Shown here piece after piece: positions 1,530-43,086 of a stretch of DNA of 64,000 bases. A program made the translations under genes and the position numbers. A model generated the notes under the pieces. That model ran no database searches. It had not been told where the DNA came from and saw only the letters and a program-made list of their open reading frames with translations. Origin of the DNA: Macrostomum hystrix (taxonomy: Eukaryota > Animalia > Platyhelminthes); contig CATNEN010000001.1 in NCBI GenBank assembly GCA_950097015.1, forward strand, positions 10,354,001 through 10,418,000. Direction: 5' to 3'. Position 1 is the stretch's first letter. Every line of letters begins with the position of its first letter.

Positions 1530-2695
1530 ATGGGACAACAATTCAGCCTCAAGAGAGCTGCAAGACGTGGAGACCTAAAAACTGTTTGCTTCTATCTGAC
1601 ACTGGCCTGGGACAGTCAAAGGAGGAATAAAATTTGCGCAGACTGTTGTAAAACCGCAGCTGGTGAGGGTCATCTGTCAGTGGTGAGATTTCTGGTTCAG
1701 AAAGTTACCGACCGAAGCGTAAAAGATCGCTGCTGCGTGAGAGCTGCACAGTATGCTGCATTTAGGGGCCATTTAGAAGTGCTTCAGTTTCTTGTTATGA
1801 CAGTCGCCGACCAAAGCGTGAAAGACGAGTGCTGGGTACTTGCTACGAGATGTGCTGCAAGATCAGGTCAGTTCGAAGTTATTAAATTCCTGGTGCACAA
1901 TGCGTCTGATCAACACGTGAGAGATCAGTGCTGCTTGAAGGCTGCAGAATCTACTACAATAGATGTTGTTCAATTTCTGGTAAAGACAGTTGCTGACAAA
2001 AGTGTGCGAGAGCAGTGTTGCAAGAAGGCCGTGGAACACGCAGCAAGAAACTTTCAGTGGGAATCAGCGAGAGTTCTGATACAGACATTTCCTGACCGGA
2101 GATTGAGAGAGGTTTGCCATCGCGAATGTTTAGTCATTGCTTGCTCAGGTCTTCATGAAGACGGAGTCACTCTACTTGGTCTTCAACCCGAGTGGCTCTT
2201 CCAAATCAGCGAGGTCCTCAGCTTTGCCGCCGCGATGGCCATCGAGGGCAGAAACTGGATTCTGAACAATACTTTGTCTCAAATGCAGCCAGCCCAGATC
2301 ACGCACCTATTGTGTACCTCCATAACTAATGGGCATGTCGCACTGGCTCTCACACTCCTGTCACAATCAAGTCAATATCGACTCGAACGAGAACATGTTG
2401 ATCTGCCAGACGGCACAGGAGCCACTGCTCTCATGCTGGCAGCTGATGCAGGTCATCACGAGCTCATTGAGAGGCTGGTGGACCTCGGGGCGTCAGTGCT
2501 AGCTGAAGACAGTCAGGGTCGGACAGCTCTGTCGCGAGCTTGCGAAGCGGGTCACGTGCGAGCGGCCAAGACTCTGATGGACAGAGGGGCGGATGCGAGT
2601 CATCGGGACAGTCGGGGTCGGACATGTGCGAAGCTGGCAAAGCAGCTTGGACTCCTGCAGGTGGTTCGACTCTTCGAGAGCCGCCGACGATCAAG
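1530..2695 (+). CDS. Ankyrin-cGLR (Mab-21/cGAS-like) gene, exon 1: ankyrin repeat region
   Basis: ATG 1530 (MGQQFS). About 5-6 divergent 33-aa repeats (AAxxGHLxVVxFLV...D.CC), then canonical ankyrins (GATALMLAADAGHHELIERLVDLGA; GRTALSRACEAGHVRAAKTLMDRGAD). Donor AG|GTGTGT at 2696 is phase 2 and matches the acceptor at 3051. Alternative donor GTAAGG at 2700 would need the 2847-2890 micro-exon. Confidence 0.85.
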
Positions 2696-2846
2696 GTGTG
2701 TAAGGGGCTCATTTTTTTATCTTATGTTATCTTCTCACTTTCCCAGAAAGGTACTGCCTCTCGTGAAGAGAGTTTGAACTCAAAAAACCAATAATAGCGT
2801 TGCTGAATCATAACTTTTAACACAAATTTTCGTACACAAATTTTAG

Positions 2847-2890
2847 TCACTCGAGGGCCAAAAAGGCAGCCGGACTCTGCACCGACTCAG
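2847..2890 (+). CDS. Possible 44-nt micro-exon of the ankyrin-cGLR gene
   Basis: ttttag|TCACTC...ACTCAG|gtgttg. It bridges the phase-0 donor at 2700 to the phase-2 acceptor at 3051 with no stop (SLEGQKGSRTLHRLR). Confidence 0.4.
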
Positions 2891-3050
2891 GTGTTGCTGT
2901 GTGAGCTGCTTTTTTCTGCTCATGGGGATCGCGATTTGCGCTTCAACTCAAACAGCAGCTGGACTCTCAGCTGATCAGCTTGAGATGCCGGTCACTGTGC
3001 AGGTGTACTGACTGAACTACATCAGCTGACTGAATTCCCTGTCATTACAG

Positions 3051-3415
3051 GCTCAGAGACGACTCACAGTGGGACAGGCAGCTCAGTGAGGAACTGCACC
3101 GACTGCTCATCAAGGCGGGATTCACTCAGGAGAGAGCGGAGTGTCAGCAGAGAATGGCTGACTGGCTCCAAGGAGTCGCTCGAGTCCTCACTCAGAACTC
3201 GCAGATGCAGATGACAGGCAGCTACGCAGAGGGCTGGGCCAACAGTCTGGTGCAAGTGAACGGCAGGACAGCGGCTGACTCAGACATTGACTGGACTGTG
3301 CTGGTTCAAGGGCAGAAGCTGCATCTGAAGGGCGGCTGCCATGGACATGGAGCATGCGGAGGCGCCACGAAGCTGCAAATCGCAGAGGGTCATGCGCTGG
3401 TAGCAGTTGGATCAG
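3051..3415 (+). CDS. Ankyrin-cGLR gene, exon 2: nucleotidyltransferase N-lobe
   Basis: Acceptor cattacag|3051. Reads LRDDSQWDRQLSEELHRLLIKAGFTQERAECQQRMADWL...QMTGSYAEGW...ADSDIDWTV, the Pol-beta superfamily hGS...DhD motif (GS 3217-3222, DID 3283-3291). Donor G|GTAAAG at 3416, phase 1. Confidence 0.88.
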
Positions 3416-4156
3416 GTAAAGGACATCTAATCGATTTGCTAAAATCTAAAGAAGACTAAGCTAGACTCAAAATTTCAGTTTCTTGTTTCATAATTTAACA
3501 GAAGAACTATCAAAGGGGATTCCCCTCCCCAGTCACAACTTTTTGTGCTGCACCTGAACGGAGCAACGCAAGCACACGAAACTCAAGAACACGGGCCAAC
3601 TTTTTGTTTCGAATCTTCTGAAACAAGAATCAAGACGCCAGCCCTTCAGACCGTCGAGATATTCAATGGTTCTGGTCGCAGGTCGGGTTTTTCCCATAAG
3701 AGCTAGTGTAATTCATCCACCCCTAAACACGAATAAGCACTGCGCCTCAGTGCGGCCTTGCCAGGCCTTCAAAATTGATCAGCATGTCTCCCGAATGTGC
3801 CTGCATCATCTCCGTCTTCGGTGGTCACCTGTCTTTATTTAGACGGACTGCTGGACCTTCAAGGACCTTCAACTGGTGTAACTAGGCCACTATGGACTAG
3901 CCCTGACGCGAATTTCTCCAATATTCTCCAATGCCACCACCTAGTCTGTCAACCAATCAGTCACCACCCAACGCTGTTAGCATTCGGGCGCTGACAAAAT
4001 CCCCTTTGGTATAAAACTTCATTACTTAAAAAAGCAAAAAAAATATGTTAGTTTTCTCGAAAGCAGGTTGGCCAGTTTTGATTTGTTTGCTTGGATATAT
4101 TTCCTTTCGATGAAAAAATGCAAGGCCCTGACCGAACTCATCACCACTCACTGCAG

Positions 4157-5847
4157 GCAGCCAACCTGCCGTCTCTGCCAAGGCATGCGGTGTGCGGCCT
4201 GCTCAGGACACGTGCCATGCGATCCAGTGCTGCAGTGGCTTCTGTGGCAACAGAGTTAAGAAGCTGATTGGACACAGCAACACTTTTGTTCACCTCGTGA
4301 GGGCGACCAGACCAAACTCGACCAATGAGCTCAGAGTGAGCTTCAGCTTACATGAGAAAGAGGCCATGAGTCGGCTGAGCACAGTCCAGGGACAGCTGTT
4401 CTCAATCATCAAGTTCATCTTCAAGAGATATTTGCCACTCACTCTGGACACACCTGGACTCAAGACCTACCATGCAAAGACTCTGCTCTTCTTCATGCTG
4501 GAGAAGCATGGCACAGACCCGAATGCTGAAGCTTGGCAGCCTCAGAATCTGATATCACTGCTGAAGGAGTCTCTCGACAGGATGCTGAGCTTCATCGACT
4601 CAAGCAGCTCACCCGATGAGTGCATGCCACACTTCTTCATGGCCGACGCTCCGCTCTACTTCAAGAACGCTGGAATCGGCGGCGACTTCGACAACACAAA
4701 GACGAGGGTTCAAGACCGACTGAGAGAGCTGAGAAGCGACATCGGCGGAGTGGTTGAGCAGATGAGGAGACTCGTGAGACCTCTGCAGTCAGAGAACTTC
4801 TACTTTCACCCGTTCACTCTGCTGCCACTGACAGCGCCGCCTGCTGTCACTCAGATTAGGGAGGGACACCTAAAGTTCGCAGACGTGTACAGTGTGGTGC
4901 ACCATTTTTTTCGCGAGCTGCAGTCAGAGTCTGCAGACAGAGACACCCTGATGAGGCAGCTCAGTCTCCTGCATCAGCTGCAGTGGTGCAAGTGCGCCGC
5001 TCTGTGCATGACCGCCATGGCACATTTGAAGTTCGGAGACTCCGAGGAGGCTGAGAGACTCGCGATGGAGCTTCAGAGTCACAGAGTTCAGAGTGGAATG
5101 AGGCCTGGTGATATCGGAGATTCGCTACGTAGTAGTCACTACGGTGACTCGGACTGGGTGTGGAGGTTCTGCCTCCCCGCAGACACTCCGCTTCGATTCC
5201 CATTCCTTCCCGAGTTCACGCAGACTCTGCTCACAGCCAGACTGTCACAGCCTCGCTCTGAGCACCTGTACGTGAACTTCCGCTGCCTGAGCTGGAGTCT
5301 CCAAGCTGAGCTGCTCCGCAATCGCACAGCAATCGACTTCGATGCGTGGCTCTCAGAGCTGCAAGGGGACCCGGACTTAGAGGAGCTGCTCACTCTGGCT
5401 CACTACAGCGACCAAGCTAAGCACGTGGAGTTCAGCCTGCGACAGATGGAGACCTTCATGGACGAGACACGCGTCGCCATGGAGACGGAAGACTTTGACA
5501 AGATACATTCGGTCAAAGAAAAGAGTTTAGATTCGTCATTGGAACAACTTGGCACAACTCGTGCATCACAAAAACGACAATCATTGCTCAGCAACCATGC
5601 GAGTCGCCAGTCAAGGTTACTTAAGCGTAGGATTACTGCTATAAAAATAGTAAACATAACTGACAATACCTTAAACAGTCCAGATAATTTGCGGCTGTCC
5701 CATGAGGCTCGTGAGCTGATGGTCGCCGTCGATCGTCGATTCGCTTCGGCTATTGACTGGCTTCAAGTGGCCGCTCTGTCAGTATTGTTTGCTCTTGTCT
5801 TTTTGTGCGCCATTACACCGCATAACGCCTGTGCCCCCGTCCCATGA
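4157..5847 (+). CDS. Ankyrin-cGLR gene, exon 3: Mab-21 C-lobe, helical/TPR-like region, C-terminal TM helix
   Basis: Acceptor ctgcag|4157, phase 1, in frame. Motifs QDTCHAIQC (third acidic residue at 4207), VHLV, LRVSFSLHEKEAM, LKTYHAKTLLFFMLE and CMPHFFM match cGAS/Mab-21 VDxxxAL, WRLSFSxxEK, SYHxKT and xHYFxP motifs. Hydrophobic WLQVAALSVLFALVFLCAIT lies near the C-terminus. Stop TGA 5845-5847. Confidence 0.88.
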
Positions 5848-5979
5848 GTCTTGTCCCCATGGACATGGTTCCTCTTGAAGTATTTTTACACATTTGCTTG
5901 AAATTCAAAGAAACTAACTTTCGTTTCAACAGATGCTTCACTAAAAATAGAATAGACTTTTATAGTTTGATGGATATTT

Positions 5980-6178
5980 ATTGGTCACAACTCACCAACT
6001 GCTCTGTGCAAGGACAGAGTCAGAGTCTCTTCTTGATTCTTTATTCGTCAGAACTCACCAGCTGATTGTATTGGTCACAATTCATCAACATATTCCGTAT
6101 CGGTCACAATTCACCAAATTATTTAGTTTTGGTCACAATTCATCAACTAATTTTGTATTTTTCACAACTCACTAACTG
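5980..6178. repeat. Degenerate short repeat (GGTCACAA(C/T)TCA(C/T)CAA, about 6 copies) downstream of the cGLR stop
   Basis: Motif recurs near 5981, 6047, 6071, 6100, 6130 and 6162. Confidence 0.45.
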
Positions 6179-7867
6179 TTGGATAGCTGAGAAAGATCGC
6201 CGCTCTCTTAAGTGAAGTTCTAATAAAATTCTAAACAAAAAAGTAACATTATGTAATCTTAGTTATTTTAACGCAACGTGTTTTAAATACATTGGTCATC
6301 TTCATGTAGCTGTTTATTTGTAATAATCAATGACGAGAAAGGGTTCTGAGGCGAAATATTTTCATGTTGAGGCTGAGTCGTGAATTGCACACATAACTGT
6401 TTCAAACATTCAAGCTTGTCACTTTCTAACTACTAAAACAAAACACAGTAATATATTTTCAAGAACTTAAGCAGCTAATTAAACGTTTTATGTTAGTAAC
6501 GATGCACAAATTTTATTAATAGTAATTGAACTTGTTTCAATAGCATTTTCCACAGCATTTCAATATCATTTTCCGAAAAATATTACTCTAACAATAGTTA
6601 TTCGGAACTTAAAGTACAAGATATGATCCAAATTAAATAAAGTACAGTGAATTTAACTGACAGAACAATTGCAATTATTTAGCTTTTTCAAATCTCTGAT
6701 AACAAGCCAGTGGTTAGGCCCTATTGAATTTATTTGATTAGAAAACCAGATTTTTTATTTGATTTTTAAGAAAATGACGAAAAAGTCTTTTTTGTGTTTT
6801 TTAATTAACTAAACAGGCTTTCTTAAAAAACATAATTAAAATACGAAAACCGACTTAACTAAAAAGCTAGACTAATTTTGTTTCTAATAAGCTTTTGAAC
6901 TTACATCAAAAGAAAATAGGCTTTAAAATAATATGGTGTTATTTAACTAAACTTTTACAATTAATAAATATGAACAGTAGATGTCAAGTCTAATAAGTTT
7001 GACATATGTCATATGTGAGCATTGTGATTTACATATCGTTCTATATCTCGCTGTACTTAAATCCTAAACAAAAGCTGGAATTATTGCTCATCTTAGCTTT
7101 GGGGTGACATTGTTGTTAATATTTGCCTATTTAAAATTTAATTTTTTTACTTATTGTAAGAAGGCCTGCTTCCTAGATAAATCATTATCTTTACAAGTAA
7201 TTTAACAAAATATTTTAGGGTCTATTAAGTCATATGGTAGTATTTTGAAATAAAGTTTTAGGCCCCCAGAGTCAGGAATGTGGCCTTAGCCATGGAAAAT
7301 TCTGGTGCGCATCAGGGGTCCCTAGTGCACTAGGCACCTGGTGCACTCTAGTCCTTGGTGCTGCATGGCACACAACACAGTGCACAAAGTGGTCCTTGGC
7401 ACACATCCCACACAGAAACTGTGTATAAATGACTCACAGATGGCACACAGTTGGGGATCCTAGACACTTTATCATCTTACAACTTCGTCATCCACTTGGA
7501 AGGTAGGACACTTTGTCATCCAGCCAATTGGCATGCTTTAAAGTTTGGTCAGTTCGTCATCTACTAATAACAAGCAATCAAGTTCGTCATCAATAAAGTG
7601 AGGGTGGGGTGGTAGGGCAGAGGTGTGAACACACTTCACACTCTAAATTGTCAAAAAGAGGTGTCGAAACTGATTTCATTATAAGAGTTGAAAGATAGGT
7701 GCCAACATAATGTGAGGAGAGGTGCTTCTGTTCTAACTTTAAAAACTTTTGTTTTATAGATGACAAAGTGTCCACAAGTCTAAGTCTCTTCGTTATCCAT
7801 CCTCTGAGATATTGGACTGATCGTCATCTGGATCAGCAGTTCTCAACCTTTTATTCAGGCGACCCTA

Positions 7868-8720
<853 letters not shown>

Positions 8721-10587: not shown

Positions 10588-13500
10588 ATGAAGCATTTTC
10601 TACATGCTCAAAATGAATGCAACATTTCAGCGGCATCAGCCAATTACAACACTCCTGCGACTTGTCCAGGAGCAGCAGCGAATATGAAACCCAAGTGCCC
10701 AGCCAAAGCAAAGCCAAGAAAGTTGCGAAATCAACAAAAAGCTAAATGCACCAACAATACTACTTTAGAGAGTACTAGAAGTAGTAGAAAGCATGGATTC
10801 CGACTTAGTCGCTTAAATTTATCTCCGGAGGAGACCTTTTGTATCGGCAACGTCATCGGCGGTGCATCCACTAGCGACGTTGTATTGAAGCCAACTAAAA
10901 ATTATCTGACAAGATCGCAAAAACAAAATCAGCAGCAGCCACAGAAAGATGCAGAGCTGGAGAATGATGAAGTGTTAGATAGTACTCTAGTGCTTAGTCA
11001 GACGAACTTGCGCACTTGTGCGACATCCAACAAGTCTCAGGGTGCTAAGTTATCGTCGAAGAACTCTGTTCTTTTAAATTCGCCGATTCCCTCTGACAGC
11101 ATGTTGAATTGTTCACCCGTTGTTGTCTCTGCGTCTCGAGCTGCCACCAAAGCTGCGGTGGTTCGCGTCGTTCGTCGTCGATTACGAGCTGTGCGGCAGT
11201 CTACCGAGGTCAGTTCGCCTAGTCCCAATCGACCTGAGACCTCTAAGACGACTGATCCACCCCAGCAAGCTCCTTTGGAAACACTGGCATCCTTTTCAGC
11301 TGCGCCACTTGCAAATGAAGGCTCTGCCACTTGTGTGAAGCCGCTACAGAATGTCCACGCTGCGAGGCGGTCTAACAGTGTGCCTGTACCACGTGTTCTG
11401 GAGCTGTCTTCAATTGTAGGCGACAGCGTTGCTGCCACTGGCAATGTTGCAATGTCCACCATGGTAGTGCAGTACGGAGCCAGCGGGCGCCATCGCATTC
11501 GGTCTAAACTATCCGATGATGCAACGTCTGATAGGCTACCCTCGAATACTTCTGCGATAAAAGTTGCTTCTAGCTCGAGAGAAACTAATCGAAAAATTCG
11601 ATCCAATATTGTCAGCAGAAGTAGGGCGACTGAGATTGAGAAAGACCAACACTCTGATGTAGGCGCTGCAGCAGTGGAAGCTAGTTGTTCTTCTCGACCT
11701 AACATTACAAATCTAAACCGTCAGTCTATGGAGCAACGTATAAAACATTCGATGTCTGAATCAGAACAGTCTCAGATTGTTATTAGTCCTGACAATGGAT
11801 GTTTAGTTAATTCAACTTCGATGGTAGACGATGGCGAATTTGTGTCGAAGGCTAGTACACAGGCCTCAAACAGTAGCAAGATTTCGAGATCTGTTGACTG
11901 TCCAATTGACACTGCGACAGTAGCTGTCGAAGCGGTGACTGCTTCTATGCCATCTGCTCACACTGTCAGCTGTGCTGCTGAGTCAGCTAGTTCTCAGCTA
12001 AGTTGCAAATCCACCAGTGCTAATAGAACAAAAGAACCTCGCGCAAAGCTAATGGCTCCTTCAACGGTTATTCAAAGTAGTAGTCGCAGTTGCTGCCAAT
12101 TCGATCGCAACAGAGAGCGCAGCAGAAAACTAGAAGCAACTAGGAGCAGTTTATTGAGACGTTGCCTTCTTCGTAACAGCTTATCTATTGATCGCGACTC
12201 AATCGCTGGCCGAGTTAACCAACCAGTCAATGAAGCATCGACGGCATCGAACTCAATACTAGATGGCGATAAGCCAGATACTTCTGTTCAAAAGCAAGTC
12301 GGTTTTGTCTCTTCTCAACTATCTCCAAGCGAGAATTTCTCGCCGAATGACGATTCGCGTGTAAATTTGTCTAGACTAGAAATGGCGTCTTCCAATCTCC
12401 TATTGCAAGCTAGTTATGACGTCAACAGTGCAGGCAATAGTGAGGAGTCAAGATTGAAAGCGTCAGTTATGAAGCAAAGGTGCGACTCTGTGGGTAGTGA
12501 CAGTCCTGCTAAAATTGAATCTTTACCGTTAAGAGATAACCTTGAAGCCACTGGCTTTACTGATGGAGAACCTGATAGCGTACAGCAGAAACAGGATCCA
12601 GGCGATAGTTGCGCTTCTAGTGAAAGTTTAGTCGTCCAATCAAGTAACGATTCAAGTGCTGTATTACAAGCTAGCTGCCTCAATGGTGCTAACGAGTCGC
12701 CTAGCAAATCCATCTTGCCAGAAGATACAGTAGATGAGAATCTATGTTTAAGCATCAATGTCTATCCAGGTGATACGTTCAGCCAATCACAAAGCGACGA
12801 CAAAGAGCTTGTGTCTGACGACTCCGCTGAGACTTCTGCTACTAGTCTGTTGCCAACAGCTGGCAAAGCCAGTGCGACCAATGCTAGCTTGACTTCTGTT
12901 GATCTCAGTCAGACTAGCACAGACGATGAGGATAAAGATGAAGCTGCCAATGCTTCAAACTGCTCCGTGTATTTCGATGCCGCATCCCTGCATGATGAGG
13001 GCAGCCAATCAGATGACTACGGTAGCCAACCTTTTAAGACAACATCGATTGTTACACCATCGGATAGTGAGTCCAGTTTGCGATCAGAAGCTTATGTTGG
13101 TTACAGTCTTCGAAGCAGACCAAATTACAGATCCGATGCGATCCAATCAGGCCAGTCCACTCAACTTAGTAACCAGTCGGATGTTAGTACTGACCGAAAA
13201 TTCAAACGCACAAAATCTGCTTCCGGTTCTTCTCATCTAGTCAACGAAAGCAATTGTCAGCAGCTAACTCTACAACCGGAAGTAGCCGGATGCCGAAGTG
13301 AAGAGCTGGTCAACAGTGCTGCTGGTGAATGTTTGCTTACGGATAAGATCTTGCAGCCTGGTGTTTTGTCGACTAGCTTCAGTTTCCCGCAAAAGAAGCT
13401 GAACTTTACGTCGTGCGACTCTCAAATATGCCAACAGAGTCTAAATCGTAAGTCTACACCGGAAGTCGCTAGCAGCCTAAAGGATCAATCGATTTCACCA

Positions 13501-16500
13501 TGTCTTCTAGAAGACAGGAGTCTGCAACCAGGCGTTCCTATCAGAAGATGCAGTCGGCGGCAATTCGCTGACACACCGTCCACATCTAAGCAAGGTGAAC
13601 AGTCTGATGTTGCTTGCAGCCACAGCATCCTGCAAAGCCATGCTACGCCAAATGCATCTTTGCTTAGCGACAAAAGTTCGCTAGAAAATATTGGTACCGA
13701 CTGTATGCTGCAGCGAAGGCAGAATTTAACCTACTCCGCATCTAAGCTGAACCAGCAAATTCAGGAACAGAATGTCTGTGTTAGTTCCAGCATCCGGCAA
13801 TGCAATAATACCTATCGGCTAAACGCCAAAAGTCCACAGTCGGGTGCAACTGTCCATAGCCGCAGTTTGCGACACCCTAAAGTGTATTATTCAGCATCAG
13901 CTGCAGCTAAACTAAGCCAACAAAGTCAACAATCAGAAGGCATTAGCAGCCTCGATTTACAGCTGACCACTGTTGCATCTGATGCGCCAGTGTTGAAAGC
14001 GAAAACTTTACAGTCGGAGGTCATACATGATGGCAACGGTAATTTGCGGCAAAAACAGTACTGTGCTACGGCAACATCTCAGCTCGATGCTAATGTCCAA
14101 AGTGTTGAATCGGAAGTTGCAGCTTTGCAGTCTGAAATATCAGCGTCTCCAACTCTTAATCTGTCCAGTGCAACTGTAAAGCCTGCAGTTCCCGTTGTCA
14201 GCGCGCGGAGGTGTGCTAATTCTACGTTTACAATTTCCGAAACTGAGGATCTAATGTCCACCCAGCAACCGGAATCCCTCAATGTTAGTCGCGTGGATTC
14301 ACGAGATTCAACAGTGAACTATGTCGAGTGTCATTCTGATAGTTGGTTAATCAGTCAAAGCTCTGAGCCATGTGGTCAAGCCGGTTGCAAAACTCCAGAC
14401 TTGTCATCAACCGCTATTCTAACACCGAGTGCGAGCCGCGTTGACAAGGAGAATTGCGCACGAATCACAATAGCCAAAGGCGATGCTTTACGTGACCGGT
14501 CCTTTGTTCGTTCGAGTTCTCAGCCTGTGCTCAGTAGCTTGCAACGCTGTCGCTCAGCAATTTTAGCCTCGCCTGCAAAATCAGTTTTTGCATCAGTTAT
14601 GCCTGCTAGAAAAACCGAAGAAATCGCTTTTGCGATTACGAAAAATAAAGAGCCAGTACTTGTAGACGAATCTGTTCAATGGAGCGAGCCTTCTCCAACT
14701 GCGATTTGCAGCAGCAACAACCGGTCGGAATTCTACGAGACTGAGCTGGAGATGTCAGTCAATGATTCTTCTATTCGACGTCAATATTTAGACTCTGTGC
14801 ATGCGTCAAACTTGTACACCACTGTGGACGAACAGACAGTAGACGATGCCAATATTCGACAGGAACTGATACCCTCTGTTAGACGTCGACCACAGCGCGA
14901 AACAATTTTAAATGCTGACAGTAGCAGGCCTTCTTCTACATCCATAATCGACCCAGCCAGTGTCGCTGCTGAAACGCCTTCTAAGCCAGACGACAGTGTC
15001 CACGCTACTGAAGACAATCAACCAGTTTTAGTAGACGAATCGATTCAGTTCAATGGTCCGTCACTAGCTGTAAGGATCAGTATTCCTAGTGCTTATGGAA
15101 ACTATTCAGGCGCTGCCTTATCATCGAAGTTTTACAAAACAGAATACGAACAGTCTGTCAATGACTCATCTATTCGACGAAAATATTTGGACTCTGTACA
15201 TGCGTCTAATTTGTTTGCAACTGAAGCAGAATGGACAGTCGAAGATGCCATCGTCCGAAAAGAGCTAATACCATCTATTAGTCGGCAGCCGCACCAAATG
15301 CAGACGGAACAGGACGAAGAGGTTGCTAATATGGCTACCTATCTAACCGAAGCCGAGTTCACTGTTTACGACAGCCGGGTGCGAGGTCAGTATCTGTCCT
15401 CCTGGCGAGAATCTGGCATGTTTGTCACGGTTGATGCCGAGGTCACTGTCGATCAGTCGTCTATTAGGCGTCTATATTTACCGTCGATTTTAAATCCATC
15501 CGGACCAGATGTCGATGAGTCGTTGCCTCTACAGTTGATGGTCAGGTCGATGCATGTTGGGCTAGAGGATCATTCAGAGATAACTGACGATGGTCAACAG
15601 TCTGTCAAGCCGGTGTCGGCTAAATCAGAATCCAAGATTGACACAGGAGCAGGAGAGAATGTGTGTCTAGCAAAAGCCACGCTCAGTGACACCGAAGCTT
15701 CTTGTCACGGACAGTTAAATCAACTCGGAAACAATCGATCTGCATGTGTTGGACTAGAATCGGAAAATCTTGCCAAGCGTGTTGAGAACTTGCGCCAACA
15801 AACGGTAGCAACGCGTAGCGACAATCTCACTAATAACAGGCCGTCACAAGCTCAAAAAGAATCTAGTAGTTCTTTGGCATTGTGCAGCAGACAGGAGTTA
15901 GCTCTAGTGCCCGCTAGGCCGAATGCACAGAGTTACGCTGAGGCAGTACTCACGGACGATGACTCTCTTGAATCATCGGGCAGTAAGCAATCAATCGAGC
16001 CAGCTGAGTCTTCTGCTCAACCAGAGTCTTGCACTGAACCGGCTGCTTCAACTGCTATAGCCGGCGTTGCTGCCAGTCTTCTAAAATCTGAGAAGAGAGC
16101 TCTGCGTAGCAAGAAACTTTCCAGCGCTGTCAATGATGCTCAGTCGTCGAGTCCGGTTAGGAACGCTTGTACAGAGGCTACCGATGACAGTGTTGTTAAA
16201 TCGGTGGACTCAGCCAAAGTTGAGGATTGTCTAGTCCATTTTAGCGACGGCTGCAGTCGATCTCCAACTCAACTCTTACCACTGGAGTCTTATAGTTTCT
16301 TTTGCGACGATCGTGGCGTAGAATTCGATTTGGCGGCGTTGCAAAATGTCGAACTGTCCACTAGCATTTTGGACGAATATCGATCCGCGGTTGCTAAGCA
16401 ATCGGTTGAGACTAAAGCCGTGAGGCGTAGTGCCAGACAATTCAATAATCCGCCGATTCGACTAAAGAAGCCGAATAACAAGATTTGCGTGTTCGGCTAT

Positions 16501-16605
16501 ATCAAACATCCTGTACGAGTGATGGACAAGGTTCTCATCGGCTTTCTCGACACTAAAGAGCACGCCAAGTTAAAGCAATTGTTGGCTAAGAAGAGTTACG
16601 TATGA
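10588..16605 (+). CDS. 2005-aa Ser-rich, largely disordered protein of unknown function (single uninterrupted ORF)
   Basis: 6-kb ORF that is not a DNA tandem repeat, flanked by AT-rich DNA. It has a diverged internal protein repeat (14730-15490) and a basic/hydrophobic C-terminal tail. I recognise no known domain. Confidence 0.8.
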   Translation: MKHFLHAQNECNISAASANYNTPATCPGAAANMKPKCPAKAKPRKLRNQQKAKCTNNTTLESTRSSRKHGFRLSRLNLSPEETFCIGNVIGGASTSDVVLKPTKNYLTRSQKQNQQQPQKDAELENDEVLDSTLVLSQTNLRTCATSNKSQGAKLSSKNSVLLNSPIPSDSMLNCSPVVVSASRAATKAAVVRVVRRRLRAVRQSTEVSSPSPNRPETSKTTDPPQQAPLETLASFSAAPLANEGSATCVKPLQNVHAARRSNSVPVPRVLELSSIVGDSVAATGNVAMSTMVVQYGASGRHRIRSKLSDDATSDRLPSNTSAIKVASSSRETNRKIRSNIVSRSRATEIEKDQHSDVGAAAVEASCSSRPNITNLNRQSMEQRIKHSMSESEQSQIVISPDNGCLVNSTSMVDDGEFVSKASTQASNSSKISRSVDCPIDTATVAVEAVTASMPSAHTVSCAAESASSQLSCKSTSANRTKEPRAKLMAPSTVIQSSSRSCCQFDRNRERSRKLEATRSSLLRRCLLRNSLSIDRDSIAGRVNQPVNEASTASNSILDGDKPDTSVQKQVGFVSSQLSPSENFSPNDDSRVNLSRLEMASSNLLLQASYDVNSAGNSEESRLKASVMKQRCDSVGSDSPAKIESLPLRDNLEATGFTDGEPDSVQQKQDPGDSCASSESLVVQSSNDSSAVLQASCLNGANESPSKSILPEDTVDENLCLSINVYPGDTFSQSQSDDKELVSDDSAETSATSLLPTAGKASATNASLTSVDLSQTSTDDEDKDEAANASNCSVYFDAASLHDEGSQSDDYGSQPFKTTSIVTPSDSESSLRSEAYVGYSLRSRPNYRSDAIQSGQSTQLSNQSDVSTDRKFKRTKSASGSSHLVNESNCQQLTLQPEVAGCRSEELVNSAAGECLLTDKILQPGVLSTSFSFPQKKLNFTSCDSQICQQSLNRKSTPEVASSLKDQSISPCLLEDRSLQPGVPIRRCSRRQFADTPSTSKQGEQSDVACSHSILQSHATPNASLLSDKSSLENIGTDCMLQRRQNLTYSASKLNQQIQEQNVCVSSSIRQCNNTYRLNAKSPQSGATVHSRSLRHPKVYYSASAAAKLSQQSQQSEGISSLDLQLTTVASDAPVLKAKTLQSEVIHDGNGNLRQKQYCATATSQLDANVQSVESEVAALQSEISASPTLNLSSATVKPAVPVVSARRCANSTFTISETEDLMSTQQPESLNVSRVDSRDSTVNYVECHSDSWLISQSSEPCGQAGCKTPDLSSTAILTPSASRVDKENCARITIAKGDALRDRSFVRSSSQPVLSSLQRCRSAILASPAKSVFASVMPARKTEEIAFAITKNKEPVLVDESVQWSEPSPTAICSSNNRSEFYETELEMSVNDSSIRRQYLDSVHASNLYTTVDEQTVDDANIRQELIPSVRRRPQRETILNADSSRPSSTSIIDPASVAAETPSKPDDSVHATEDNQPVLVDESIQFNGPSLAVRISIPSAYGNYSGAALSSKFYKTEYEQSVNDSSIRRKYLDSVHASNLFATEAEWTVEDAIVRKELIPSISRQPHQMQTEQDEEVANMATYLTEAEFTVYDSRVRGQYLSSWRESGMFVTVDAEVTVDQSSIRRLYLPSILNPSGPDVDESLPLQLMVRSMHVGLEDHSEITDDGQQSVKPVSAKSESKIDTGAGENVCLAKATLSDTEASCHGQLNQLGNNRSACVGLESENLAKRVENLRQQTVATRSDNLTNNRPSQAQKESSSSLALCSRQELALVPARPNAQSYAEAVLTDDDSLESSGSKQSIEPAESSAQPESCTEPAASTAIAGVAASLLKSEKRALRSKKLSSAVNDAQSSSPVRNACTEATDDSVVKSVDSAKVEDCLVHFSDGCSRSPTQLLPLESYSFFCDDRGVEFDLAALQNVELSTSILDEYRSAVAKQSVETKAVRRSARQFNNPPIRLKKPNNKICVFGYIKHPVRVMDKVLIGFLDTKEHAKLKQLLAKKSYV

Positions 16606-40875: not shown

Positions 40876-43086
40876 GGGAGATGAGACACGGGAGGGATGA
40901 GACACGGGAGAGATGAGACACGGCAGAGATGAGACACGGCAGAGATAAGACACGGCAGAGATGAGACACGGCAGAGATGAGACACGGCAGAGATGAGACA
41001 CGGGAGAGATGAGACACGGGAGAGAAGACAGGGCAGAGATGAGACACGGGAGAGATGAGACACGGGAGAGATGAGACACGGGAGAGATGAGACAGGGGAG
41101 AGATGAGACACGGGAGAAATAAGACACGGGAGAGATGAGACACGGGAGAGATGAGACAGGGGAGAGATGAGACAGGGGAGAGATGAGACAGGGGAGAGAT
41201 AAGACACGGGAGAGATGAGACAGGGGAGAGATAAGACACGGGAGAGATGAGACACGGGAGAGATGAGACACGGGAGAGATGAGACACGGGAGAGATGAGA
41301 CAGGGGAGAGATGAGACAGGGGAGAGATAAGACACGGGAGAGATGAGACAGGGGAGAGATAAGACACGGGAGAGATGAGACACGGCAGAGATGAGACACG
41401 GGAGGGATGAGACACGGGAGAGATGAGACACGGCAGAGATGAGACACGGCAGAGATAAGACACGGCAGAGATGAGACACGGCAGAGATGAGACACGGCAG
41501 AGATGAGACACGGGAGAGATGAGACACGGGAGAGAAGACAGGGCAGAGATGAGACACGGGAGAGATGAGACAGGGGAGAGATGAGACACGGGAGAGATGA
41601 GACAGGGGAGAGATGAGACACGGGAGAAATAAGACACGGGAGAGATGAGACACGGGAGAGATGAGACAGGGGAGAGATGAGACAGGGGAGAGATGAGACA
41701 GGGGAGAGATAAGACACGGGAGAGATGAGACAGGGGAGAGATAAGACACGGGAGAGATGAGACACGGGAGAGATGAGACACGGGAGAGATGAGACAGGGG
41801 AGAGATGAGACAGGGGAGAGATAAGACACGGGAGAGATGAGACAGGGGAGAGATAAGACACGGGAGAGATGAGACAGGGGAGAGATGAGACACGGGAGAA
41901 ATAAGACACGGGAGAGATGAGACACGGCAGAGATGAGACACGGCAGAGATGAGACACGGCAGAGATGAGACACGGGAGAGATGAGACACGGCAGAGATGA
42001 GACAGGGGAGAGATGAGACACGGGAGAGATAAGACACGGGAGAGATGAGACACGGCAGAGATGAGACGCGGGAGAGATGAGACACGCAGAGATGAGACAC
42101 GGGCGAGATGAGACACGGGAGAGATGAGACACGGCAGAGATGAGACAGGGGAGAGATGAGACACGAGAGAGAGATGAGACAGGGGAGAGATGAGACAGGG
42201 CAGAGATGAAACAGGGGAGAGATGAGACAGGGGAGAGATGAGACACGAGAGAGAGATGAGACACGGCAGAGATGAGACACGGCAGAGATGAGACACGGGA
42301 GAGAAGACAGGGCAGAGATGAGACACGGGAGAGATGAGACAGGGGAGAGATGAGACAGGGGAGAGATAAGACACGGGAGAGATGAGACACGGGAGAGATG
42401 AGACAGGGGAGAGATGAGACAGGGGAGAGATAAGACACGGGAGAGATGAGACAGGGGAGAGATGAGACACGGGAGAAATAAGACACGGGAGAGATGAGAC
42501 ACGGCAGAGATGAGACACGGCAGAGATGAGACACGGCAGAGATGAGACACGGGAGAGATGAGACACGGCAGAGATGAGACACGGGAGAGATAAGACACGG
42601 GAGAGATGAGACACGGCAGAGATGAGACGCGGGAGAGATGAGACACGCAGAGATGAGACACGGGCGAGATGAGACACGGGAGAGATGAGACACGGCAGAG
42701 ATGAGACAGGGGAGAGATGAGACAGGGGAGAGATGAGACAGGGCAGAGATGAAACAGGGGAGAGATGAGACAGGGGAGAGATGAGACACGAGAGAGAGAT
42801 GAGACACGGCAGAGATGAGACGCGGGAGAGATGAGACACGCAGAGATGAGACACGGGCGAGATGAGACACGGCAGAGATGAGACACGGCAGAGATGAGAC
42901 ACGGCAGAGATGAGACACGCAGAGATGAGACACGGGCGAGATGAGACACGGCAGAGATGAGACGCGGGAGAGATGAGACACGGGCGAGATGAGACACGGC
43001 AGAGATGAGACACGCAGAGATGAGACACGGGCGAGATGAGACACGGCAGAGATGAGACGCGGGAGAGATGAGACGCGGGAGAGACT
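40876..43086. repeat. 16-bp purine-rich minisatellite GAGATGAGACACGG(G/C)A
   Basis: Directly visible. Internal block duplication of about 510 bp (variant GGAGGGATGA at 40891 and 41401). Confidence 0.96.

Follow-up and report, generated by a model that had tools for sequence, protein, structure and literature searches.

The window considered in this study is the whole 64,000-nucleotide (nt) stretch of the Macrostomum hystrix genome at positions 10,354,001 to 10,418,000 of contig CATNEN010000001.1 (assembly GCA_950097015.1), and positions given below without a contig name are counted from its first base. Three open reading frames (ORFs) lie on its plus strand at 1530-2777, 3154-3459 and 4192-5847. 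A preliminary description, made from the sequence alone, had joined them in phase through GT-AG introns into one protein of about 1073 amino acids (aa), in which ankyrin repeats are fused to a cGAS-like receptor (cGLR). As a family, cGLRs are established innate immune sensors. Comparison with related sequences bears the joining out. As read from that comparison, the locus is one intact three-exon gene encoding a 1073-residue protein, and this protein very probably belongs to the cGLR family.

The three exons are in phase and add up to 388+1+121+1+562 = 1073 codons. On the sequence, intron 1 opens with GT at 2696-2697 and closes with AG at 3049-3050, intron 2 opens with GT at 3416-3417 and closes with AG at 4155-4156, and the codons split at the two junctions are AGG and GGC. 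The related M. lignano protein P0006 runs through all three exons: its residues 1-290, 309-431 and 428-887 map by tblastn to 1530-2687, 3049-3417 and 4147-5523, with 68.5% identity between exon 2 and P0006 aa 309-431. The M. lignano proteins P0011 and P0030 are likewise colinear with all three exons, and residue 1 of P0030 aligns at base 1530. For the comparison of motifs, order and splice sites, 20 paralogous loci were fetched from the M. hystrix genome (220 Mb, 42 contigs). The order of N-terminal ankyrin array, canonical ankyrins, exon 2 and exon 3 was found in 19 of the 20. At homologous positions, the acceptor AG of intron 1 is kept in 13 of 14 paralogues, the donor GT of intron 2 in 17 of 17 and its acceptor AG in 19 of 19. 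The conserved coding sequence of exon 2 begins at 3051, yet this exon contains no start codon before 3154. The weakest point of the predicted gene model is the intron-1 donor at 2696, which was placed by its GT and by phase only. The coordinates of the parts are collected in Table 1.

Table 1. Parts of the ankyrin-cGLR gene and their positions in the window.
Feature	Position	Strand	Content
Exon 1	1530-2695	+	388 codons plus 2 nt; two ankyrin arrays
Exon 1, first part (aa 1-230)	1530-2219	+	About six atypical 33-residue ankyrin-type repeats; hypervariable module
Exon 1, second part (aa 231-388 plus 2 nt)	2220-2695	+	Helical linker, then three canonical ankyrin repeats
Intron 1	2696-3050	+	GT..AG, phase 2
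Exon 2	3051-3415	+	N-terminal spine helix and first half of the nucleotidyltransferase core; 121 whole codons
Intron 2	3416-4156	+	GT..AG, phase 1; contains a high-copy dispersed repeat
Exon 3, first part (aa 1-200)	4157-4758	+	Third catalytic Asp, remainder of the nucleotidyltransferase core, Mab-21 C-terminal helical lobe
Exon 3, middle part (aa 201-460)	4759-5538	+	Acidic, family-specific C-terminal domain
Exon 3, tail (aa 461-562) and stop codon	5539-5847	+	Variable, basic; predicted tail-anchor membrane helix

Intron 2 varies from 80 to 1084 nt among the paralogues. It is long in the window gene (741 nt, against 80-430 nt in paralogues) because of a high-copy dispersed repeat at about 3514-3966, over which the contig depth is about 350-1800 in three sequencing runs. 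Many loose contig ends lie around this repeat, at 3540 and at 3999-4000. The run search returned five sequencing runs, none of them recorded as RNA, and three of the five (X3-X5) contain the stretch. The contigs of X3-X5 are short. Since they match exactly even over the non-coding positions 1400-1530, at a depth of 3-7 over 1400-2437, these runs were read as genomic DNA of the same species at low coverage. Apparent joints in the run contigs were not counted as splice evidence because letters had been replaced in them or the contigs came from paralogues.

The ankyrin array proposed for the N-terminus was recovered with Pfam in both halves of exon 1. The repeats of aa 1-230 share an 'AA..GHLEV..FLV' core and a conserved Cys-Cys pair, and this part matches Ank_4 at 60.8 bits and Ank_2 at 59.6 bits; aa 231-388 match Ank_2 at 91.5 bits. 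The ankyrin matches of the gene range from 1e-16 to 5e-26, and both the 33-residue tandem periodicity and the match to ANK profiles are those of ankyrin repeats. The repeats of the window gene have diverged too far for Tandem Repeats Finder to detect them in the DNA. Identity to the nearest paralogues of the same genome is only 40-45% in the N-terminal array and 75-79% in the canonical ankyrins of the second part of exon 1. The N-terminal array also changes its length in 99-nt steps, from about six repeats in the window gene to about 50 in the paralogous locus L026. The ankyrin array is the most variable part of the protein and is therefore the best candidate for a recognition or gating module. 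In L026 (G000:C1:13851304-13861303), the array lies at about 3521-8479 of the locus on the minus strand and consists of about 5 kb of uninterrupted 99-nt repeats. Repeat numbers in L017, L023, L027 and L028 are intermediate.

The catalytic site of the nucleotidyltransferase (NTase) core is divided between exons 2 and 3. Exon 2 holds MTGS at 3211-3222, with Gly-Ser at 3217-3222, and Asp-Ile-Asp at 3283-3291, and the third catalytic Asp lies at 4207-4209 in exon 3, within RPAQDTCHAI. Counted piecewise over the two exons, the site reads M-T-G-S, X20, D-I-D-W, X56, Q-D-T. The published active-site rule for cGLRs is h[QT]GS X8-20 [DE]h[DE]h X50-90 h[DE]h (Li et al. 2023, PMC9980059). The window gene follows this rule with two deviations, and the intact GS/DxD/D site claimed at first is upheld by it. 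The Mab-21 C-lobe is upheld as well. LRVSFSLHEK, LKTYHAKTLLF, CMPHFF and AMAHLKFGDSEEAERL are all present in the translation of exon 3, which matches Pfam Mab-21_C at 29.3 bits against a curated cut-off of 24.1. Exon 2 alone matched no Pfam family. Weak HMMER links (E 1e-9 to 1e-4) lead to proteins carrying PF03281 plus PF20266.

The structure was predicted for P0004, an M. lignano paralogue of 659 residues and about 75% identity that has no ankyrins, from an alignment with 44 relatives. The AlphaFold model of P0004 has a predicted local distance difference test (pLDDT) score of 88.8 and a predicted template modelling (pTM) score of 0.88. In the model, strand 61-64 is followed by GS, strand 87-93 contains D87 and D89, and strand 146-156 contains D148, which is the usual arrangement of polymerase-beta-type NTases. 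With this model, Foldseek returned cGAS throughout among the matches listed (E about 1e-7, probability 1.00). VIA-align gave Z 15.2-13.7 with a root-mean-square deviation of about 3.5 A over about 264 aligned residues, and the superposition covers residues 21-335 of the model against 161-521 of human cGAS. No OAS entry was present among the Foldseek and VIA-align rows listed. A profile search of PDB sequences with the family alignment was dominated by ankyrin matches and gave no residue-level cGAS alignment. The likeness to cGAS and cGLR1 structures is thus found on the paralogue, and a cGAS-like fold of the catalytic domain of the window protein is supported by this modelling.

Vertebrate cGAS (PDB 6ct9, 4k9b, 7uyz) has the same bilobed fold of NTase and helical bundle, with Z about 15 for the P0004 model over the entire catalytic domain, and shares with the window protein the GS activation loop, the [DE]h[DE] pair and the third acid. 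The cGAS motifs WRLSFSHIEK, SSYHVKTAFFH and NYFIPEFNLF correspond to LRVSFSLHEK, LKTYHAKTLLF and CMPHFFMADAPLY in the window protein. However, sequence identity to cGAS is only 18-22%, and the loop between GS and DxD has 20 residues in the window protein and 11 in cGAS. Unlike that of cGAS, the core of the window protein is not strongly basic but near neutral, with an isoelectric point (pI) of about 7.8. Beyond cGAS, the window protein has the N-terminal ankyrins, a C-terminal domain of about 260 residues and a membrane helix. Cv-cGLR1 of the oyster Crassostrea virginica (PDB 8gjw), which responds to long double-stranded nucleic acid, also shows the same fold as the P0004 model (VIA-align Z 14.2, 265 aligned residues), although identity is 15%.

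The window gene is one member of a large family. Exon 3 gave 77 scored matches out of 193 candidates in the M. hystrix genome, most of them with intact frames of 450-600 residues and many in tandem on contig 1. The family therefore counts at least 77 loci in this genome, many of them in tandem arrays. GS, DID and the third Asp are kept in all 20 of the fetched paralogues, down to 37% core identity, and most of 45 aligned relatives retain them too. Such strict conservation of the triad argues for catalysis. In a few relatives the motif is lost or degenerate (P0022, SNVN; P0034, CDMN; P0037 and P0111). The nearest paralogues in the same genome are 78-81% identical in exon 2 and 87-91% in the core encoded by the first part of exon 3. 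The best M. lignano match reaches 77%, against up to 89% for the paralogues of the same genome. The exon-3 search returned 29 proteins, all but one of them named as M. lignano (the other is an unnamed JGI protein); most have ankyrin domains and about half also have Mab-21_C. Every family member checked by name was from M. lignano, down to 28% identity, and among the named database proteins checked the ankyrin-cGLR radiation is seen only in Macrostomum.

Two of the paralogous loci deserve separate mention. L034 (G000:C1:10342459-10343775, minus strand) is a divergent paralogue, 37-52% identical by piece, with intact GS/DID/D. It is found on the opposite strand, about 10-12 kb upstream of where the window begins. 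In L024 (G000:C1:3358710-3368709; exon-2 match at 7428-7880), the segment of the GS activation loop is duplicated internally and reads MTGSYAEGWANSLVQVNGRTGQDSQMQMTGS. This locus may be an altered or disabled copy.

cGLRs have been defined across animals, where 87% stand alone and some are fused to TPR or ankyrin repeats, and such accessory repeats were proposed to be ligand- or protein-interaction modules (PMC9980059). In the same study, nematodes and 'most' platyhelminthes were without cGLRs, and nucleic-acid-sensing cGLRs had a higher pI (PMC9980059). MAB21L1/2/3 were described as having no predicted functional active site and a non-immune developmental role (PMC9980059). MAB21L1/L2 share the Mab-21 fold family with the window protein, which is not of their type because it keeps the full triad and has accessory domains.

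Five M. lignano cGLRs were cloned for the published screen and incubated with double-stranded DNA (dsDNA) and poly I:C (PMC9980059). Samples 92 and 93 of that screen (PAA93208.1, BOX15_Mlig001946g3, and PAA68676.1, BOX15_Mlig016402g1) belong to the subfamily of the window gene, and sample 90 (PAA45980.1) falls in one of the retrieved family clusters. The motifs of samples 92 and 93 are nearly identical to those of the window protein (TGSYAEGWANSL.QVNGRTAADSDIDWTVLV, RPAQDTC.AI, LRVSF, LKTYHAKTLLFFML, CMPHFF), and related database proteins with both Ank and Mab-21_C (P0001-P0007) show 73-77% identity over exon 3. They differ from the window protein in that they come from another species and in that the window protein has an ankyrin array and a C-terminal membrane helix of its own. 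The constructs of samples 92 and 93 begin at the residue equal to the start of exon 2, which means that the ankyrins had been removed. The other invertebrate ankyrin-fused cGLRs (ANK class, Fig. 1C/S2A, PMC9980059) have the same architecture of ankyrins on a cGLR core but show no close sequence kinship, the family matches checked by name being all from M. lignano.

Because ankyrin-cGLR fusions and M. lignano cGLRs are already listed (PMC9980059), the window gene does not represent a new architecture. The novelty claimed in the preliminary description is therefore overstated, as both the class and its M. lignano members had been catalogued. The literature found gives neither a product nor a ligand for them. 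The new elements here are the family size, the hypervariable ankyrin array and the co-occurring divergent family of STING-like ORFs. In the literature text searched, we found no description of so large a copy number or of repeat numbers ranging from about 6 to about 50. No paper with both cGLR and Macrostomum in its main text was found, nor, among the papers listed and judging by title and abstract, one on a Macrostomum STING.

The C-terminal domain (aa 201-460 of exon 3) has a pI of 5.4, and its aa 331-460 are 85-88% identical in the nearest paralogues. It matched no Pfam family, and neither did the last 232 aa of the protein. The region behind the Mab-21 lobe had been described as helical and TPR-like. 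We rejected this reading, as TPR_4 reached E 0.23 and 12.6 bits against a cut-off of 27 and the P0004 model is not all-helical there; its residues 361-606 form helices interleaved with short strands, with pLDDT mostly above 85. The membrane helix, also part of the preliminary description, is predicted at 5761-5817 (LQVAALSVLFALVFLCAIT), 9 aa from the C-terminus, and its hydropathy is clear (Kyte-Doolittle 2.44 over 19 residues). As a trait of the family it did not hold. Because it is absent from the contiguous frame of all 20 sampled paralogues in the same genome and rare among database relatives (3-5 of 46 family members), the membrane helix is a feature of the window copy and not of the family. 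The last 100 aa of the window protein had no matching paralogue.

A candidate receptor is present in the same genome. A genome-wide search with the Pfam profile of the STING ligand-binding domain (STING_LBD, PF15009) returned one ORF of 337 residues (G000:C2:9104028-9105038, minus strand; positions 1000-2010 of locus L013). At its start, this ORF is very similar to helix 1 of solved STING domains, and all 30 of its weak PDB sequence matches are STING chains, at helix 1 of the ligand-binding domain. The ORF has 14 matches in its own genome, with a cluster at 8.97-9.10 Mb on contig 2 and copies on contigs 7, 38 and 39. A word-based homologue search with the ORF found no match, and a search of the ESM Atlas was uninformative (top score 0.76).

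We infer the catalytic activity, product, ligand, cellular location and receptor of the window protein as follows. The protein would sit on the cytosolic face of an internal membrane, inactive and held there by its tail anchor. Its fast-evolving ankyrin array would bind a ligand, which is more likely a protein or another non-nucleic-acid cue than dsDNA or double-stranded RNA (dsRNA), and binding may remodel the GS activation loop, which is unusually long. The Asp-x-Asp...Asp site would then make a nucleotide second messenger from nucleoside triphosphates, and this signal would probably be read by the divergent STING-domain proteins of the same genome. The ligand is probably not a nucleic acid because the core is near neutral and the ankyrin-less cores were not flagged as active. 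It had been suggested at first that the ankyrins replace or gate nucleic-acid sensing, and the hypervariability of the array and the near-neutral core would fit this suggestion. Taken as a whole, a mechanism of tail-anchored, ligand-gated ankyrin-cGLR signalling to STING-domain proteins seems to us moderately likely.

Several observations weigh against this mechanism. The gene structure is predicted from comparison with related sequences, and none of the five sequencing runs is recorded as RNA. In the active site, the third acid is flanked by Q and T, neither of which is hydrophobic, and the GS-to-DxD spacing of 20 is the upper limit of the published rule. The Mab-21 nucleotidyltransferase model PF03281 was matched neither by either exon piece nor by the paralogue P0004, and it is for P0004, not for the window protein itself, that the fold and the positions of the catalytic residues were predicted. 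The helix that would serve as tail anchor is missing from the contiguous frame of every one of the 20 sampled paralogues. Repeat arrays diverge fast by unequal crossing-over, and the variability of the ankyrins is no proof of ligand-driven selection. In Table S3 of the published screen, the 'active' Note is empty for all five M. lignano rows, with 15 active enzymes elsewhere (PMC9980059). The missing note for the ankyrin-less cores fits an absent ligand, but it fits an inactive enzyme too. The search for STING in the same genome yielded a STING-like ORF with its 14 genomic matches, but the ORF scored 25 bits (E 1.4e-5), below the PF15009 cut-off of 27 bits. The single-sequence AlphaFold model of this ORF was unusable (pLDDT 36).

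It is conceivable, although in our judgement unlikely, that the protein is an active NTase of the cGAS/OAS fold and yet no cyclic-dinucleotide/STING immune sensor. Its product would then be a different one, for example linear 2'-5' oligonucleotides like those of OAS or some other nucleotide adduct, or its role would be non-immune, such as self/non-self or reproductive recognition in a hermaphroditic flatworm. The fold and the catalytic triad indeed leave the product unspecified, but the best structural matches are cGAS and the oyster cGLR, with no OAS among the rows listed, and the active site follows the published cGLR rule. No product was reported for the M. lignano cores (PMC9980059), and there is a large family-specific C-terminal domain that matched no Pfam family. 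The position of the STING-like ORF under the Pfam threshold would also agree with another product; against this, a STING-like family does coexist with the ankyrin-cGLR family in the genome, and immune receptor families typically combine tandem radiation with a hypervariable recognition module.

A pseudo-enzyme or scaffold, in which the Mab-21 domain is structural and the ankyrins assemble proteins without a nucleotide signal, is considerably less probable still. Developmental MAB21L proteins are thought to act structurally. Since P0022, P0034, P0037 and P0111 have lost the motif, the fold can persist without catalysis, and the absence of flagged activity for the five recombinant M. lignano cores (PMC9980059) would agree with a scaffold. 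However, none of the 20 sampled paralogues has lost GS, DID or the third Asp, despite identities as low as 37%, and such strictness would be unexpected in a protein without catalysis. That the gene model is wrong, with the ankyrin and Mab-21 ORFs being separate neighbours or the locus an untranscribed recent duplicate, is very improbable: none of the sequencing runs returned is recorded as RNA, the intron-1 donor was placed by GT and phase, and the database model P0004 starts just before the cGLR core without ankyrins, but the order is kept with conserved splice positions in 19 of 20 paralogues, ankyrin and Mab-21_C occur together in about half of the 29 annotated relatives, and all frames are intact, with exon 2 conserved from 3051 and without a start of its own before 3154.

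To our knowledge, dsDNA and dsRNA are the only ligands known to activate cGLRs, and most of the enzymes tested have been silent in vitro. For the sensing of anything other than dsDNA or dsRNA, ankyrin-fused cGLRs are obvious candidates, and the removal of the ankyrins suggests why the published M. lignano constructs showed no flagged activity. Macrostomum is a practical system for asking what a cGLR with an accessory domain detects, as RNA interference and transgenesis work in M. lignano. With a family of STING-like ORFs in the same genome, the downstream half of the pathway becomes testable too.

A wider reading is more speculative, and we regard it as possible but doubtful. The Macrostomum radiation of ankyrin-cGLRs might be a germline-encoded, diversifying repertoire for sensing proteins, in which the hypervariable ankyrins determine specificity against pathogen or other non-self proteins rather than nucleic acids and switch on a cGAS-type enzyme, with the signal read by divergent soluble STING-domain proteins. 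The ankyrin array could then be comparable, by analogy, to the LRRs of NLRs or to lamprey VLRs. If this were true, Macrostomum would have a complete, rewired cGLR-STING system in a phylum that has otherwise been reported to have lost one.

The window has a few other features. A 143-residue ORF at 301-732 on the plus strand, just upstream of the gene, contains a poly-Gln run and Arg/Ser-rich stretches. It matches no Pfam family and may be non-coding or belong, as an exon, to a neighbouring gene. An ORF of 2005 residues at 10588-16605 on the plus strand has no Pfam match at E 0.001. At 40878-43084 there is a 16-bp satellite (GAGATGAGACACGGGA) of about 138 copies, which keeps all three minus-strand frames open for 2.2 kb. 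The minus-strand 'ORFs' of 736-762 aa at this position are artefacts because the satellite leaves the frames open.

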